Positions 20,499-43,666 of a stretch of DNA of 64,000 bases are shown piece by piece. The position numbers were made by a program, and so were the translations under genes. The notes under the pieces were generated by a model that saw only the letters and a list, made by a program, of their open reading frames with translations, was not told the origin of the DNA and did not search any database. The stretch is from positions 1 to 64,000 of IMG/VR virus record IMGVR_UViG_3300033984_000473; one strand, given 5' to 3'. Position 1 is the stretch's first letter; every line of letters starts with the position of its first letter.

Positions 20499-21893
20499 AT
20501 GGTAGTACGCACATATTTCGACAAGAACAACACAATCGTTAGTAACCTAAACGTCAATACTGGTTTAAACCCAGTAACTGAATTGTTTTATGGTGGAGCT
20601 ATCGGTCAACAACAATATAGCAGATTTCTATTTCATTTCGATGAAACTAGATTAAAAGCAATGTATAATGATGGTACCTTTACTGATTTAAGTAAACTTA
20701 AACACACACTTAGACTTACAAATACTGGTTCTTTTGACAAAGAACTTTTAAACACAAATATGGGTTCAAAAGAAAGAACTACTTCATTTGATTTGATAGC
20801 TTTTAAAATACAACAACCATGGGACAATGGTGTTGGTTATGATTACGAAATACCAATATTAGCCTACGGTGATGCTGCATTTAGTAATGGAGTCTCTAAC
20901 TGGGTAAACGCTCAAACAGGTATTGAATGGGCTAACGGTACTGGAACATATTCTGGTTCACCATCTGGTATTACAGTGTCAACACAACATTTTGACAAAG
21001 GAAATGAAAACATTGAAATGGATATCACAGATTATGTAAATGGTGTTATTACTGGAAACACAAATAATGGTTTAGGTATTGCATATGCTAGACCATTTGA
21101 ACAAATGAATACTACAAGTCTTCAATATGTTGGGTTCTTTACAAACAATACACAAACCTTCTACGAACCATTTGTTGAAACAATTTATTCTAACCACATT
21201 ACAGACGATAGAAACAACTTTTTCCTAGATAAAGCTAACAAGTTATACCTATACGTTAATCTTGCTGGAAACCCTACTAATTTGGATTTTATACCTAGTG
21301 TAGATGTTTATGACGCTAGTGGTAATATGTTTATGACTTATTCGCCATCACAAGTTAACCATGTAACAAAAGGTGTTTACTCAATCGATATCCTTGTACC
21401 AACTTCTGGAAATGAAGGTGTTATGTACAATGACGTATGGACAAACATTAGTATCAACGGTGTAATTAGACCAGATATTTCCATGGATTTTGTAACGAAA
21501 GACTCCATGGGTTATTATGATTTAAGTAACGGTGATTCATTACCTAAAAAAGTTGCTGTATCAATATCTGGATTACAAAATAAAGAAAGAATTAAACGTG
21601 GTGATATTCGTAAGGTTTTGGTTTCGGCTAGAATACCTTATACTATTGAGCAATCGCAAGCAATTAGTGGTATAAAATATAGAATTTATGTTTCGGAAGG
21701 TTCTAGTGAATTAACTGTAGTTGATTTCCAACCAGTTGAAATGGCAATTAATAACTACTATTTCTTATTGGATACTGCTAGTCTTGTACCAAATACTTAT
21801 TATTTAGACGTATTGGTTACCTCTAACCTAGAAGTGACAACAATAAAAAGAGCGATTCAATTTGATATCGTAAACCAAGTAGAACTAAGATAA
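20499..21893 (+). CDS. Putative virion structural protein (beta-rich)
   Basis: Asn/Thr/Gly-rich, YSRFLFHFD…WDNGVG…IEMDITDYV pattern; late motif upstream. Confidence 0.6.
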   Translation: MVVRTYFDKNNTIVSNLNVNTGLNPVTELFYGGAIGQQQYSRFLFHFDETRLKAMYNDGTFTDLSKLKHTLRLTNTGSFDKELLNTNMGSKERTTSFDLIAFKIQQPWDNGVGYDYEIPILAYGDAAFSNGVSNWVNAQTGIEWANGTGTYSGSPSGITVSTQHFDKGNENIEMDITDYVNGVITGNTNNGLGIAYARPFEQMNTTSLQYVGFFTNNTQTFYEPFVETIYSNHITDDRNNFFLDKANKLYLYVNLAGNPTNLDFIPSVDVYDASGNMFMTYSPSQVNHVTKGVYSIDILVPTSGNEGVMYNDVWTNISINGVIRPDISMDFVTKDSMGYYDLSNGDSLPKKVAVSISGLQNKERIKRGDIRKVLVSARIPYTIEQSQAISGIKYRIYVSEGSSELTVVDFQPVEMAINNYYFLLDTASLVPNTYYLDVLVTSNLEVTTIKRAIQFDIVNQVELR

Positions 21894-21896
21894 ATT

Positions 21897-22235
21897 ATGA
21901 AAAACTTTATAAAAAGATTGCTTAGAGAACAAATGATTGATGGTCAAAACATGAACAAAGGAACACAATATGCGTGTAACAAAATGACTATCAATAGTTA
22001 TTCTGAAGCGTTGGAAAATGTTGAAAGAGCTTTGAAAGGTGCTAACCCAGAAACTAGAACACGTGTTATGCAAAAAATTCACGCACCTTTAGAAAATTTA
22101 AAGAACGAAGAAAGTAAAATTACTGACGAAGTTAAAACAGCACATATGTCTGGGGATTCAATACCAGATGAGGCTGACACGTACTGGCATCAAATCCAGA
22201 CAACACTTTGCGAGATGGGTCCAGAATTCCAATAA
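21897..22235 (+). CDS. Hypothetical protein with N-terminal IKRLLRE peptide
   Basis: MKNFIKRLLREQ. Confidence 0.65.
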   Translation: MKNFIKRLLREQMIDGQNMNKGTQYACNKMTINSYSEALENVERALKGANPETRTRVMQKIHAPLENLKNEESKITDEVKTAHMSGDSIPDEADTYWHQIQTTLCEMGPEFQ

Positions 22236-22253
22236 ATTATTTTTAAAAAAGAC

Positions 22254-22285
22254 TTGACAAATAAAGTATTTGTCGTATATTTATA
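22254..22285 (+). promoter_or_regulatory. Promoter for the 22391 gene (TTG-N19-TATATTTA; also contains TATATTTATA)
   Basis: TTG 22254-56 and TATATTTA 22276-83, Bacteroidota-type spacing. Confidence 0.55.
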
Positions 22286-22286
22286 T

Positions 22287-23325
22287 TTACGTTAACTCAA
22301 CGTATTAGTCCCGACCATTAAAACGGTTTAGAGTTTAGAGATAAACAAAGGTATTAGTACACTAATAACAAACATTAAAAGTTAAACAACATGAAAAAAC
22401 AAATGATTATTGAACCGTCAAAAGCGGTTCCGACAGCTAACATTGCTGTAAACAAAAGTAGAATTAAAATCTACGAAAATGATGGCAACATGCCAACTTA
22501 CTATCTTCAAAAAGGACAAGAGTTCCAAATTGAATTATACAATCCGACTCAAGGAACTGTATTAGCAAAAATTTCACTTAACAACACATCAATTTCTCAA
22601 GGTGGTTTGGTTTTAAAACCTGGCCAAAGAGTATTTTTAGACCGTTATCTAGACGTAGCTAAGAAATTCTTATTTGATACTTATGAAGTATCAAATTCTG
22701 AAGAAACTAAAAAAGCCATAGAAAAAAATGGTGATTTTAAAGTTGAATTCTTTAAAGAACTATTACCAGTACGTTTTATACCATCTAATTTAATTGTAGG
22801 TGGTTCTTATGGTGGTTCTTTCGGTGGACCAAGTTATGGTGGTGGATATGCTCATACAACACTATCAACCAACATACCTAATGGTGTGTGTTCAACCAAC
22901 GGGTTAATTGAAACATCATCATCAGCGTATTACAACGCTACTTCTACTAACATAACTAATTGTAGTAGCAGCTTTTCAACAAGCGTAACGACAGATGCAC
23001 TTGGTTCTTTTTCTGATGATGTATTATCAGCACCTAAAGGTGGAATACTTCGTTCTGCAAAAAAATCAAAATCAATTGAAACTGGTAGAGTTGAACAAGG
23101 TTCAGATTCTGACCAAAAATTCAAAACATCAAACAAAGATTTTGAATACTTTGCTTTCCACACAATCGAGTGTAAGATGCTTCCAGTATCTCAAAAAATT
23201 AACACAGCTGAAGACATCAACGTGAAAAGATATTGTACAAACTGTGGTGCTAAGTTAGGAAAAACAGATAAATTCTGTTCTAGCTGTGGTACAAAAGCCT
23301 AAATAAATTACAAGAGTTAACGTAA
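22287..23325. repeat. 12-bp perfect inverted repeat bracketing a single gene (TTACGTTAACTC 22287-22298 / GAGTTAACGTAA 23314-23325)
   Basis: Direct reading; arms lie just after the promoter and just before the terminator. Confidence 0.75.
22391..23302 (+). CDS. Hypothetical protein with Gly/Ser-rich linker and C-terminal zinc ribbon
   Basis: CTNCG…FCSSCG at the C-terminus; stand-alone transcription unit. Confidence 0.75.
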   Translation: MKKQMIIEPSKAVPTANIAVNKSRIKIYENDGNMPTYYLQKGQEFQIELYNPTQGTVLAKISLNNTSISQGGLVLKPGQRVFLDRYLDVAKKFLFDTYEVSNSEETKKAIEKNGDFKVEFFKELLPVRFIPSNLIVGGSYGGSFGGPSYGGGYAHTTLSTNIPNGVCSTNGLIETSSSAYYNATSTNITNCSSSFSTSVTTDALGSFSDDVLSAPKGGILRSAKKSKSIETGRVEQGSDSDQKFKTSNKDFEYFAFHTIECKMLPVSQKINTAEDINVKRYCTNCGAKLGKTDKFCSSCGTKA

Positions 23326-23326
23326 T

Positions 23327-23359
23327 AAAAAAAGCCGAGGATTATTCTTCGGCTTTTTT
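23327..23359. terminator. Bidirectional intrinsic terminator between convergent genes
   Basis: AAAAAAAGCCGAGGA-TTAT-TCTTCGGCTTTTTT. Confidence 0.85.
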
Positions 23360-23361
23360 AT

Positions 23362-23820
23362 TTAATATGATGTCAGAATACAGCAGTTATAATCTTCTAT
23401 TGTTGAAATTCCTATATGTGTAAAATTAGGGTTATCTAATATTGCTTTATGTGGTGGCGAACCCAAATAAGCCGTAAGCATTGATAATGGAGTTTGATAA
23501 TTATAAGCTACTATTTCACCGACCCTTTCAGCGTGGCTTAAGTTTGCCCTAATGCTAAAATAATCATGCGAAAGAACACCTTTATCTATCATGTATAATA
23601 CATGACCAGCAGCTAGTTCTGTTGTTAACGAATCTATTTTTAAGACACTTAAACCATGGTCTACTCTATAATTATTAATTATTAAAAATAAAGTGTCATC
23701 ACTTTCAGATAAAACAATATTTTCATTTGGAATATAAATATCATTAACATGTTCTTTAGAACATGTTAATGATATTAGAATCATTATAAATAATAATAAG
23801 TAAGTGAATATCTGTTTCAT
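23362..23820 (-). CDS. CAP/SCP-domain secreted or lipoprotein
   Basis: Hydrophobic N-terminus with Cys; INNYR…GL, H..YM, LSH, GEIVA, SPPHKAIL, THIGI. Confidence 0.82.
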   Translation of the reverse strand: MKQIFTYLLLFIMILISLTCSKEHVNDIYIPNENIVLSESDDTLFLIINNYRVDHGLSVLKIDSLTTELAAGHVLYMIDKGVLSHDYFSIRANLSHAERVGEIVAYNYQTPLSMLTAYLGSPPHKAILDNPNFTHIGISTIEDYNCCILTSY

Positions 23821-23822
23821 AG

Positions 23823-24467
23823 TTAGTTTATTTTTAAGTTCATTTTATTTATCTGAAACAATTCATTTAAGTCTTTTATTGTTATTGGAATTATCTCACC
23901 ATTAACGTTTGAGCCAATCCAACAATACCTACGTTTGTCAATATATAGGATTTTAAAATATGAAATCGGTATTGGAATCTTGCTTTTTGGTAAATATTGT
24001 TTTTTTTGACCTTCATAAATGACTCCTGTGATGATAACTGTATCACGTTTATACTTGTATATCGAATCTTCAACACTTCCCTCTAATTGAGCCCATTTGC
24101 CTCTATTAAAGGCTGCTAGTTGTGGAGCTTGATTAAATAAGCTGAAAGACTCATGATTTAATACATTATCATAAGAAGTTATATGTGATGGGGTTAAGTG
24201 ACCTAAGTCGTAACCAGTGTGTAAATATAAATCTTTTTTATATTTTCCTTTGTACGTATCTTGAAACCAACGATTATCCCTTTCTTTATCTAACTTCAAA
24301 AAATTACCATACGAAATAGTATGTTTAGAAACCATTGCACATGTATCTTTTGTTAGATATAATGTGATATCACCGTAAGAGATGATTAATTTGTTGTTGG
24401 TTGTAACTGTTTGTGTGTAGCTGTTCATACTAATGAACAATACTAATAATAAAAACATTTTTGCCAT
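23823..24467 (-). CDS. Secreted DNA/RNA non-specific endonuclease (NucA/Serratia-type)
   Basis: Signal peptide; GYDLGHL, NQAPQLAAFNRGKWAQLE, IPIPISYFKI. Confidence 0.88.
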   Translation of the reverse strand: MAKMFLLLVLFISMNSYTQTVTTNNKLIISYGDITLYLTKDTCAMVSKHTISYGNFLKLDKERDNRWFQDTYKGKYKKDLYLHTGYDLGHLTPSHITSYDNVLNHESFSLFNQAPQLAAFNRGKWAQLEGSVEDSIYKYKRDTVIITGVIYEGQKKQYLPKSKIPIPISYFKILYIDKRRYCWIGSNVNGEIIPITIKDLNELFQINKMNLKIN

Positions 24468-24469
24468 AT

Positions 24470-25009
24470 CTATAATTGTATTTGAGTGAAATCGGAATCA
24501 TAAAACGGTATATTCCCTAATTTTTCTTTAAATGTAGAAAAAAAATCTGGTTCACTTATTTTAAAATCTTCTATTGTTCCACTTGCTGGTGTAAATCTAA
24601 TCCCCAGTAAATATTTAGATATTGGTTCTAATGTACCAATAAAAAATTCTTCACTTTCATTGTAATCACTTCTACTAGTATCCGCTTTTGTTTTGCTTCC
24701 AAATTGAGCAAAATAATCATGTGGTACTAATCTTTTACCAAAATCACGTTTTATCGCATCGCCATCTAGTATTAATTGTATATCACTAAAAATTAAATTA
24801 ACGTTTCTAGTTAGAGAAACACCATTATAATCTTTACTCTCACCATTAAATTTTGTTAATATTTTTTGGGTTGTTTTAGGTTCTATTTTATTATCACTAA
24901 TAATCTTTAATACTCTATCGATAAAAGTACTATGGTATAATATATTTTTACCCTTAAATGGTGATTTTAAAATTGATTCTCTAAGTAACTTTTGTATAAA
25001 TTCTTTCAT
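24470..25009 (-). CDS. Putative ADP-ribosyltransferase-fold protein with N-terminal LLRE peptide
   Basis: LYHST…GVSLTR…ESEE (H-S-ExE arrangement of ART folds); starts MKEFIQKLLRES. Confidence 0.55.
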   Translation of the reverse strand: MKEFIQKLLRESILKSPFKGKNILYHSTFIDRVLKIISDNKIEPKTTQKILTKFNGESKDYNGVSLTRNVNLIFSDIQLILDGDAIKRDFGKRLVPHDYFAQFGSKTKADTSRSDYNESEEFFIGTLEPISKYLLGIRFTPASGTIEDFKISEPDFFSTFKEKLGNIPFYDSDFTQIQL

Positions 25010-41386: not shown

Positions 41387-43666
41387 CTAATTGCTTAAAG
41401 GTGCCTTGATTGTAGCGTGCGATTGATAATCCTCTAATTGAAAATCTTCTACCTGTACATCTCTGTATGACTTATCACTTTCATGACCACAATTTTTAGC
41501 CCAAAATTCGGTGTTAATTCTTACGCTTGGCAAAGGAAAAGGCTCTCTTGTTCTTGTCGGTATTTCCCTAGTTTTTAATTTAGCATCCATCCAGTGGTCA
41601 TCGTTTGCTACCATTCCAGGTGCGTACTCATCATAATACATTTTAATCCTTTCTTCTCTGTTGTATTCTACCCCAATTTGTTCTTTAGCAGCATCCAAAT
41701 GGTTTGAATACAAATGAACATCACCCAAGTTCCCAATCAATTGGTCTGGAATCATATTGGCTTCTTCGGCTAATATCATCAACAACAATCCATAAGAGGC
41801 AATGTTGAATGGTAACCCTAAGAATGTATCTACACTTCGTTGATTCCACATTAAAGAGATTGCTCTTCGAGGTATGTTTTCAATATCCAGATATTCGTGT
41901 TTATGTGTAATTGCAAAAATAAGGTGAGATACTTTTAGTCCATCAGATTCACGTTTCTTAATTACTAGGTAGTTCTGTCTTTCTTCCAAACTCAACTCTC
42001 TTGTATAAACTTGAAATCCATAATGACAATTATGGTTAACCAAATTAAAAACATTATAAGTATGGTTATTTTCTGTTGAAATATTATATACATATCCATT
42101 ATAATTAGTTTTTTCAATATCTTTAACAAGTAACCATAAATAATCATTATCAAAAATATAATTTTTTGATTTATTTTTTTGTTGGTAAACATTTATTGAA
42201 TAAGTATTTTTTTGATTAACTTCACGACCTTCTATAATTTTTTTATTAGGTCTTTTTTGATAATATACTGACGCTTTTATATTTAATTTAGCGTATAATA
42301 ATTGTAATCCGTAGGCTATATTATCAGATACCGTAGTATAACTAATACCATCTTTAGTAATACAACCATCAGCCCTTTGATAACCTTTAATAAATTCTTC
42401 GATTAAATGCTTAGGTCCGTTATGTATAAATTGTGGTATCATTTTACCATCTGCGTATTTTCCAAACTCAGTTAATATTTTAAATAATTGCTGCTTTCTT
42501 CCAACATATTTTTTACAATTTACTCCAGAATTATTTAATCTAGCAAGACCAATAATATTTGTTAATCTAGGTAATACTTCTTCTATTTGGTTGTCATTAA
42601 TAGTAAAATAAATTTCTTTTTTAGAATTAATTAACCAACCATCACCTAAAAAATAACCCATTAAATACCAATAATCTTTATCATCTAATTTTGTAGATAT
42701 TAATTTTTCAGAATATTGGTTATCTTCGATAATAGTCTCAAATGTTGGTATAATCTCTTCTTTATTTATAGGCATACCTATATAGTCATTCTTAGTTATT
42801 TCATCGGCATTTATATAACCTTTATCTTTCACTAAAAATGGGTGATTTGGTGTTACACCAATAAATTTAGAGTTTCCATAAACCCTTATATGTAATAAAT
42901 CATTATTATATTTTGTTTCATGTAATTCATAAACCTTTTGGTAAGACCCATCTTCTGTTAATACTAAATCATTAATGGTTATTTCAGATATTTTTCGATA
43001 CCCATCAATACACGCAACTAACATATCTGAACTAAAACAAGGTGGAAGAACCATTTGGTCCAGCTCTCCAACATTCCAAGCATTAACCATTAATCGTCTT
43101 GAGTCTGGATTTGTTTTAAGGTCGTTGATTAGATTTTGGATTTGGTCTATTTGACCTTCCAATACATATTGACTAACAGGTATCTTTCCCTCTTCTTTTA
43201 TTCTTTTCAAAACTCGTTTACCACCACAGCTTCTCCATTGTTTACCATAAATAGGGCCTAATTCACCCCACTTCTTAGCAAACTCATCATCTGTTTTGAT
43301 TCTTCTAATAAATTCATCATTATCTGCAACTCTTTCTGTTCCATCATCTAACCGAATACCAGCAACATTGCCTTTATTAAATTCGTTACAATACTTCTTA
43401 TAAGCATCACCATCCCAAATATGACAATTAGCATCAACCAACGGTTTAATATTTGTTTCCCCTCGTAAGAACCATAATAGTTCTGTTACGATTGTTTTCC
43501 ATGGCATCTTCTTCGTAGTAAGTAAAGGAAAACCATCTTTCATATCGTGACGTATTTGTCTTCCAAATACGCTAATGGTCCCAGTCCCAGTACGGTCTTT
43601 CTTTTCTACTCCATTATCTAAGATATCATGAAGTAAGTCTGTATATTGTTTGTCTAATTTATTCAT
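41387..43666 (-). CDS. thyA: Thymidylate synthase interrupted by an intein
   Basis: [44 protein letters not shown]|C…N|[28 protein letters not shown]. Confidence 0.96.
42029..43039 (-). mobile_element. Intein (337 aa) with LAGLIDADG homing endonuclease, inserted just before the catalytic Cys of ThyA
   Basis: Block A CFSSDMLV, block [17 protein letters not shown] and [10 protein letters not shown], block [12 protein letters not shown], block G NHN followed by +1 Cys. Confidence 0.95.

Follow-up and report, generated by a model that had tools for sequence, protein, structure and literature searches.

Pairing of predicted transcript ends and a conserved leader fold at a gene of an uncultured giant phage

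The locus and its encoded protein

The 64,000 nucleotides analysed here (the window, by which we mean the whole stretch) form the start of a 232,931-base IMG/VR virus record, IMGVR_UViG_3300033984_000473, from an uncultured giant phage of freshwater. Positions 22254-23359 hold a gene for a 303-residue protein, a predicted promoter and terminator, and a long leader, with two complementary segments (the arms) lying close to the two predicted ends of the transcript. Comparison with homologous loci shows a conserved fold of the predicted RNA in which these ends are paired. We propose that this is probably a self-contained phage transcription unit, the messenger RNA (mRNA) of which would be protected at its closed ends and present ribosomes with a defined landing site. 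The features of the locus are collected in Table 1.

The window has 32% G+C, lacks tRNA genes and encodes a T4-like major head protein, a portal and a baseplate hub; its best DNA match is a lake-water metagenome. A Shine-Dalgarno-like motif precedes just one of its 58 long open reading frames (ORFs), and the upstream regions are 53% A. Such Shine-Dalgarno-poor, A-rich upstream regions are typical of the Bacteroidota and their phages. A Shine-Dalgarno motif was also looked for at the gene studied here, and none was found. This gene is the last of a long plus-strand block and meets, beyond a common terminator, a convergent block on the minus strand. Its promoter box is kept in the homologous loci.

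The protein comprises an N-terminal beta-sandwich (approximately residues 10-125), a disordered, low-complexity Gly/Ser/Thr linker that varies among homologs, and a C-terminus with a conserved IETGRVExGSxSDQ block and a CxxC-N10-CxxC zinc ribbon (PF13240). No function could be assigned from Pfam, PHROGs (it has no PHROG), a PDB fold search (no match at E <= 0.001) or the Atlas, where its clusters are virus-only and labeled 'hypothetical'; its structural neighbors in BFVD come from phages and large eukaryotic viruses and are uncharacterised. The copy in the closest relative (L018:2487-3397, 78% identity) matches in two reading frames and so has either a frameshift or an error of assembly in it; both arms and the leader of this locus are intact.

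Table 1. Features of the locus, in window coordinates (nt, nucleotides)
Feature	Position	Strand	Basis or remark
Promoter TTGACA (22254-59), 16-nt spacer, TATATT (22276-81)	22254-22281	+	consensus scan, 11/12 matches
End-pairing helix, 5' arm UUACGUUAACUC	22287-22298	+	at or a few nt from the predicted transcript start
Possible transient local hairpin UACGUU-aacuc-AACGUA	22288-22304	+	distal half of the 5' arm plus linker
Leader three-way junction	22302-22360	+	RNAalifold and pair counts
Junction closing stem	22302-22312 with 22350-22360	+	
Junction hairpin P2	22313-22328	+	
Junction strands UAGA and AAA	22329-32 and 22347-49	+	nearly invariant
Junction hairpin P3	22333-22346	+	
A-rich initiation window around AUG 22391	22361-22411	+	mostly unpaired in the predicted fold
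AGUUAA box, 7-12 nt 5' of the AUG	22379-22384	+	leader alignment
ORF, 303 aa	22391-23302	+	
Hairpin H1 GAACCGU-caaaa-GCGGUUC, inside the ORF (+22)	22412-22430	+	
Hairpin H2 ACAGC-uaacauu-GCUGU, inside the ORF (+43)	22433-22449	+	
End-pairing helix, 3' arm GAGUUAACGUAA	23314-23325	+	
Bidirectional intrinsic terminator, 14-bp stem including the A-tract/U-tract	23328-23359	both	common to the convergent gene block

Covariation and geometry of the end helix

The original prediction, made from the letters of the window alone, had noticed TTACGTTAACTC (22287-22298) between the promoter and the leader and its exact complement GAGTTAACGTAA (23314-23325) between the stop codon and the terminator, and both lie precisely there: counted from the stop codon's first base, the 3' arm begins 14 nt downstream (with 11 nt separating codon and arm), and it is 2 nt before the terminator stem. 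Within the window alone, a 12-nt inverted repeat of this kind is at the chance level, exact 12-mer inverted pairs within 1.5 kb numbering 36 as against 24-27 (sd 6) in Markov shuffles, and the arm word, which we sought elsewhere in the window, is not enriched. The significance of the arms thus comes from comparison among homologous loci and not from statistics within the window. A protein search of IMG/VR recovered 69 such loci with 36-78% identity, 46 of them non-redundant; in each, the ORF was located, the flanks were compared and a helix was sought between the 24 nt that precede the leader stem and the first 35 nt past the stop codon. A helix of ~10-16 bp is present at equivalent positions in 39 of the 46 non-redundant loci (2.7% in shuffled 3' untranslated regions, UTRs), and in five more (L008, L031, L035, L043 and L032) the 3' partner, an exact complement of the 5' arm of that locus, is shifted downstream by 870-1202 nt. 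Thus, arms that keep their position and covary are found in 44-45 of the 46 loci, with L024 having a weak helix and only L047 lacking a convincing one. Ranking each locus's own 3' UTR as the best partner of its 5' arm was uninformative, given that the longer arms of some loci contain the shorter arms of others. A single unit made up of promoter box, leader, ORF, 3' segment and terminator recurs, behind upstream genes that differ between phages.

Both strands of the helix change in concert, as in ACGUUAAC/GUUAACGU, GUGUUAAC/GUUAACAC, GCGUUAAC/GUUAACGC, UAUAGUUAAC/GUUAACUAUA, AUGGUUAAC/GUUAACCAU, CGUGAUUGA/UCAAUCACG, ACGUGAUUAAACUA/UAGUUUAAUCACGU and AGACCUUGUGGUU/AAUCACAAGGUCU, and other lineages display quite different helices, formed by CGUGAUUGA, ACGUGAUUAAACUA and AGACCUUGUGGUU with their complements. 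A GUUAAC core (GTTAAC in the DNA) is kept in most arms, with variable flanks: among the arms with this core, the pair adjoining it is C-G (17), U-A (6), A-U (2) or G-C (1), the next pair out is A-U (11), G-C (12), U-A (3) or G.U (2), and the second pair on the other side of the core is C-G (15) or A-U (7). The variants are scattered over the protein tree and, therefore, many independent double changes are needed; we estimate at least eight such events, the count of 25 obtained on the tree being inflated by differences in register. The idea that 5'-3' pairing closes the mRNA, for which covariation of the two arms among homologous loci had been proposed as a check, is hence supported by arms that stay in place while both change sequence, by the predicted folds and by the nature of the mismatches within the helix.

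As regards the mismatches, a count in which every non-Watson-Crick pair was penalised equally gave four G.U pairs (L019, L044, L050 and L055) and no A.C pairs in the core helices, and two further G.U pairs occupy helix positions in L039 and L065. Since G.U is the only internal non-Watson-Crick pair seen and is acceptable solely in the sense-strand RNA, the pairing likely acts there; against a half-and-half null, this bias has a p of ~0.02-0.06, which is suggestive of RNA and not decisive by itself. The complete arm helix is part of the minimum-energy fold in 31 of 33 full-length predicted transcripts, and in that of the window it joins 22287-22298 to 23325-23314. With transcript ends as predicted from promoter and terminator, the helix comprises the first 10-16 transcribed nt and a 3' segment 7-19 nt past the stop codon; it starts 5-6 nt past a properly spaced -10 hexamer in most loci, approximately at the expected start site, and leaves 0-7 nt (mode 1-2) between its end and the terminator stem, which would place both ends of the RNA next to each other. 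Four RNA libraries among the Logan contigs hold short contigs of relatives that span parts of the ORF and none that spans the leader. One 161-nt RNA-library contig of a close relative (4 differences) corresponds to 23205-23365, running through the 3' arm and stopping at the end of the terminator; its end at 23365 is a hint of the transcript 3' end, contigs being unable to prove ends and libraries possibly containing DNA.

The 5' arm may also pair locally. A hairpin at 22288-22304 appears in the minimum-energy folds of both the leader alone and a 3'-truncated transcript, and it is 82% paired across loci with weak covariation. End pairing is absent from another unit of the window that has this type of promoter (29602-29090, on the minus strand) and whose leader is short, and would thus be specific to the gene studied here.

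In the five loci with a distant complement, the 3' arm is displaced, probably by an inserted homing-endonuclease gene, by +870 nt (L008, L031 and L035), +1202 nt (L043) and +1141 nt (L032). The insert in L008 is a LAGLIDADG homing-endonuclease gene (L008:3906-4715, minus strand) that has entered the last codons of the zinc ribbon and supplies both a substitute gene end and a new terminator directly past the new stop codon; the previous gene end (FCSSCGTKA*) survives downstream of it, along with the 3' arm and the former terminator. L031 and L035 share with L008 both the downstream flank and the displacement, yet their arms differ, a pattern that suggests recent homing. Two other loci contain partial duplications: L030 (2077-2992) has a duplicated 5' gene end with a GIY-YIG-like ORF joined on behind codon 19; this fusion uses the intact arm and leader, and a degenerate second copy of the leader (43 bits) precedes the full gene. 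L060 (1842-2950) is similar, with the leader and the first 44 codons duplicated.

Homologs also occur in known giant phages. A DNA search of named phages returned one weak match, and a protein search found homologs in Prevotella Lak megaphages and in 'huge phages' of 460-640 kb (LR7565xx). The arms could be resolved in LR756500 (UGUUAAGGU/GCCUUAACA), and LR756508 offers at best a broken helix of 5+5 bp. The LR756500 locus (L078) additionally contains a second perfect 12-nt complement (TCTCACTTTGTT/AACAAAGTGAGA, at about L078:300-315 and at ~20-31 nt past the stop codon), which overlaps the 5' strand of the junction closing stem, is not nested with the arm helix and may be an alternative pairing.

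The leader junction, the initiation region and neighboring genes

The leader of ~105 nt had been described as structured, and this is borne out, the structure being a covarying three-way junction. The 47 leaders align well, and RNAalifold folds them into a junction with a 10-bp closing stem (consensus GUAUURGU.YC with GR.AUURGUAC) and two hairpins, of which P2 takes forms such as GAGUC/GACUU or GACC/GGUU and P3 such as GUUGU/GCAAC, GCUGU/GCAGC or GUUUA/UAAAC. On counting pairs, 98.4% of the cells are paired and 16 of the 20 pairs show compensatory changes; none of 500 shuffles scores as high and slid controls reach 34-51%. The leader also contains invariant G.U pairs. The repeated GTATTAGT (22302-09 and 22351-58), recorded earlier as occurring twice in the leader, is indeed present in two copies but proves to be the two strands of the closing stem, which resemble a direct repeat because of the G.U pairs in that stem. 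By comparison, the TATTAGT-AC-ACTAATA hairpin that had also been proposed for the leader does not hold up as a conserved element: only 66% of its cells are paired across homologs, 498 of 500 shuffles score as high, and it is specific to the window.

An Rfam cmscan of 21800-23800 (E <= 5) yielded no credible match for the leader or the arms and no ribozyme or intron; all hits were far below the gathering scores, consisting of a 20-bit chance match of a snoRNA model across the promoter and 5' arm and of terminator-driven noise. A covariance model built from the leader alignment finds exactly one copy in the 233-kb genome and also matches LR756504, LR756500 and LR756508. The motif is present once per genome, always accompanying homologs of ORF 22391-23302, and we take it to be an undescribed RNA motif as defined by these alignments.

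Downstream of the junction, the predicted minimum-energy fold of the closed transcript leaves 34 of the 48 nt around the AUG without a partner. The AGUUAA box in this region, which repeats part of the 3' arm, is found in all loci whose arms have the GUUAAC core and is absent from the clade with other arms; this correlation is not independent evidence, because it reflects a single phylogenetic split. Within the ORF, the GAACCG/CGGTTC hairpin (H1) pointed out by the original prediction is present at 22412-22430, and its position, not its sequence, is kept in homologs, with variants including GGCAC/GUGCC, GCACCG/CGGUGC, GGGGU/ACCCC and UCGGAU/AUCCGA, among others. MAFFT and RNAalifold could not align H1, and it was assessed by an energy z-score, which averages -3.5 (44 of 48 below -1.5) against -0.3 in control windows; in chimeras, about half of the energy is lost. 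The 3' strand of H1 encodes a conserved Val-Pro, and its 5' strand falls in the variable N-terminus. The second hairpin, H2, shows some compensatory changes (e.g., GCGGC/GCCGU in L027), with weaker support because it sits on conserved codons. The comparison shows predicted RNA structure constraining the N-terminal sequence of the protein.

The neighbors of the unit are tail-module, CAP-domain and nuclease genes. The convergent minus-strand genes at 23362-25009 code for a CAP/SCP-domain protein, the N-terminus of which is signal-like, and for a DNA/RNA non-specific endonuclease; both are unusual neighbors of a head module. In the promoter spacer lies a palindrome, GACAAATA-aag-TATTTGTC (22256-22274), that includes an inverted copy of the -35 box; it occurs in many relatives, is altered on both sides in L054 (GACAAT/ATTGTC) and may be an operator. 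Elsewhere in the window, a 759-residue ORF (41387-43666, minus strand) matches thymidylate synthase at residues 1-211 and 601-758 and other families in its middle part of ~390 residues; judging by these matches, it looks like a ThyA split by an intein or an inserted domain.

Interpretation and relation to known systems

In the reading that we favor, the first 10-16 transcribed nt would pair near the terminator, such that the ends of the ~1.07-kb RNA come to lie side by side in stacked helices, with the Y-shaped three-way junction directly behind the 5' arm. A subsequent A-rich stretch of ~50 nt would carry the AUG, to be used without a Shine-Dalgarno sequence as in Bacteroidota phages, and the junction and the ORF hairpins would frame this ribosome landing site. 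The closed ends would deny a free 5' end to 5'-end-dependent RNases and pyrophosphohydrolase and a free 3' tail to exonucleases, and their main effect would be a long-lived, highly expressed mRNA. Before the 3' arm is transcribed, the 5' arm may occupy its weak local hairpin. The closed form could be the translated form or, as in hok, a stored and inert one; we favor end protection with a landing site since the start region is predicted to be open and the product is not a small toxin. We rank a hok-like delay switch second and consider a protein operator a possible added layer.

Several points weigh against this reading. That end pairing would stabilise the mRNA is our inference; both ends of the transcript are predictions, the RNA libraries offering short contigs of relatives over the ORF and none over the leader, and the promoter is identified by its match to the consensus only. 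The conserved GUUAAC core hints at sequence-specific recognition, which simple end protection would not explain. The loci with endonuclease insertions gain a terminator right past the new stop codon, and hence the gene probably works there without end pairing, which would not be strictly essential. Among the distant homologs, LR756504 has no arms, and the Lak phages are so AT-rich that arms cannot be judged in them.

A timed switch of the hok kind is an unlikely alternative. It would make the end-paired mRNA a stable, inert store from which trimming or unwinding at the 3' end frees the 5' arm, delaying translation, with the freed arm re-pairing with the CACGU linker or the AGUUAA box and changing access to the start codon. 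The architecture, with end pairing and a possible 5' hairpin preceding synthesis of the 3' end, resembles that of hok and aapA1 (PMC9841398, PMC5416894), but the start region is open and not sequestered in the predicted closed form, and there is no Shine-Dalgarno sequence to be masked. Pairing is feasible between the AGUUAA box and the UUAACU stretch of the 5' arm (mean z -1.3), and the second 12-nt complement of LR756500 (TCUCACUUUGUU/AACAAAGUGAGA) would compete with the junction closing stem; still, the alternative pairings are short and AU-rich, and those of the 5' arm with the initiation region have weak support. Moreover, the product has 303 residues and is not a small hydrophobic toxin (under about 60 residues). 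No antisense RNA was identified and no strong minus-strand promoter lies over the leader in a generic promoter scan, a search dedicated to antisense RNAs not having been made.

Phage proteins such as T4 gp32 and RegA act on their own or target mRNAs. Similarly, the junction, perhaps with the end helix and its GUUAAC core, might be an operator bound by the encoded zinc-ribbon protein or by another phage or host protein, a doubtful reading, which could coexist with end protection. The junction's UAGA and AAA strands and its invariant G.U are conserved beyond the needs of pairing, the motif stands once per genome and always beside the gene, and the core is kept in arms with variable flanks; these features are consistent with recognition by a protein, even as the candidate itself, an Ig-like beta-sandwich with a zinc ribbon, is without a detectable RNA-binding family.

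Processing by RNase III has precedents in rRNA precursors and T7 early mRNAs. It is improbable that the arm helix is such a site, excising the mRNA from read-through of the tail operon while stacked on both the leader stem and the terminator. The arms do flank the entire cistron, and the upstream plus-strand block stops only ~20 nt 5' of the promoter with no intervening terminator found in the scan; however, a helix of 10-16 bp is short for RNase III (~20 bp or more, two helical turns), and its start just past the conserved -10 box fits a primary 5' end.

Very improbably, the end pairing is a splint for ligation, yielding a natural, covalently circular and exonuclease-proof phage mRNA. This possibility is raised because the end helix is predicted to abut the extended terminator stem, bringing the 5' and 3' terminal nt to ~2 nt from each other in a nick-like arrangement, and because the phage genome, outside the window, encodes an Rnl2-like RNA ligase (PF09414, 194552-194863) and a T4 Rnl1-like one (PF09511, 200624-201226); RtcB was sought in the genome and not found.

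Least credible of all is the original alternative of a DNA-level element, with the arms as inverted repeats at the ends of a mobile or invertible cassette, or as paired operators for a DNA-binding protein: the core GTTAAC is itself palindromic, the unit stands behind different upstream genes and homing endonucleases have invaded the locus, but the orientation is identical in all 69 loci, the promoter and the terminator are conserved and flank the arms on the outside (5' and 3', respectively), the G.U-only mismatches are meaningful solely in sense RNA, helix length and sequence drift freely while pairing persists, the endonuclease genes have inserted between the arms, their targets being the ends of the ORF and not the arms, no recombinase or transposase is found among the neighbors, and the arms are not the boundaries of the unit because the conserved unit includes the promoter.

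To our knowledge, end pairing of bacterial mRNAs is documented in a handful of cases, mostly tiny toxin genes, and its general use is an open question. In hok of plasmid R1, pairing of the 5' tac with the 3' fbi element gives a closed, untranslated and stable mRNA, and a metastable 5' hairpin forms during transcription (PMC9841398, citing Thisted 1995 and Franch 1997). The hok family resembles the phage unit in that the extreme 5' end pairs near the 3' end with support from covariation, and perhaps also in a local 5' hairpin that occupies the 5' element before its 3' partner is made, and differs from it in encoding a peptide of ~50 residues, in having the antisense RNA Sok and in hiding the Shine-Dalgarno sequence indirectly through end pairing (PMC9841398). 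In contrast, the phage unit encodes 303 residues, has no Shine-Dalgarno sequence and a start region predicted to be open, and carries an unrelated three-way-junction leader. The full-length, highly stable aapA1 mRNA of the aapA1/IsoA1 system of Helicobacter pylori has an 11-bp helix between its 5' and 3' ends, near in length to the 10-16 bp of the phage unit, and synthesis of its 3' end replaces metastable 5' structures (PMC5416894). Unlike the phage unit, in which a canonical terminator follows the 3' arm, aapA1 encodes a 30-residue type I toxin and its end helix is itself the terminator (PMC5416894).

The closest functional analog of end protection is hbs of Bacillus subtilis, a highly expressed mRNA for a non-toxin, in which a 14-bp long-range helix connecting 5' UTR and 3' UTR limits cleavage by RNase Y and raises stability (PMC5737220). 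It differs in being a single host gene, in that the helix overlaps an internal RNase Y site and not the very 5' end, and in having no three-way-junction leader (PMC5737220). In icaR of Staphylococcus aureus, a segment of the 3' UTR likewise pairs with the 5' UTR of its own mRNA, but at the Shine-Dalgarno region, blocking translation and triggering decay by RNase III (PMC3868564); the partner in the phage unit is the 5' terminus, far from the start codon. Lastly, engineered circular or end-closed bacterial mRNAs gain stability and expression from end closure (PMC13563091). Their circles are covalent, made via permuted intron-exon arrangements (PMC13563091), whereas the similar topology of the phage unit would be non-covalent.

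Thus, pairing of mRNA ends is itself known, and here it is joined to an undescribed leader motif in a viral gene of ordinary size, where compensating mutations preserve it in dozens of uncultured jumbo phages. Both the gene and its leader motif, with the arms in one case, extend to huge phages of 460-640 kb, and the gene also to Lak phages. The leader would be a new RNA motif for the databases. The unit offers a natural, richly covarying model for how end closure might affect stability and translation in hosts without Shine-Dalgarno-led initiation (Bacteroidota), and would be a natural counterpart to the closed and circular mRNAs engineered for higher expression.

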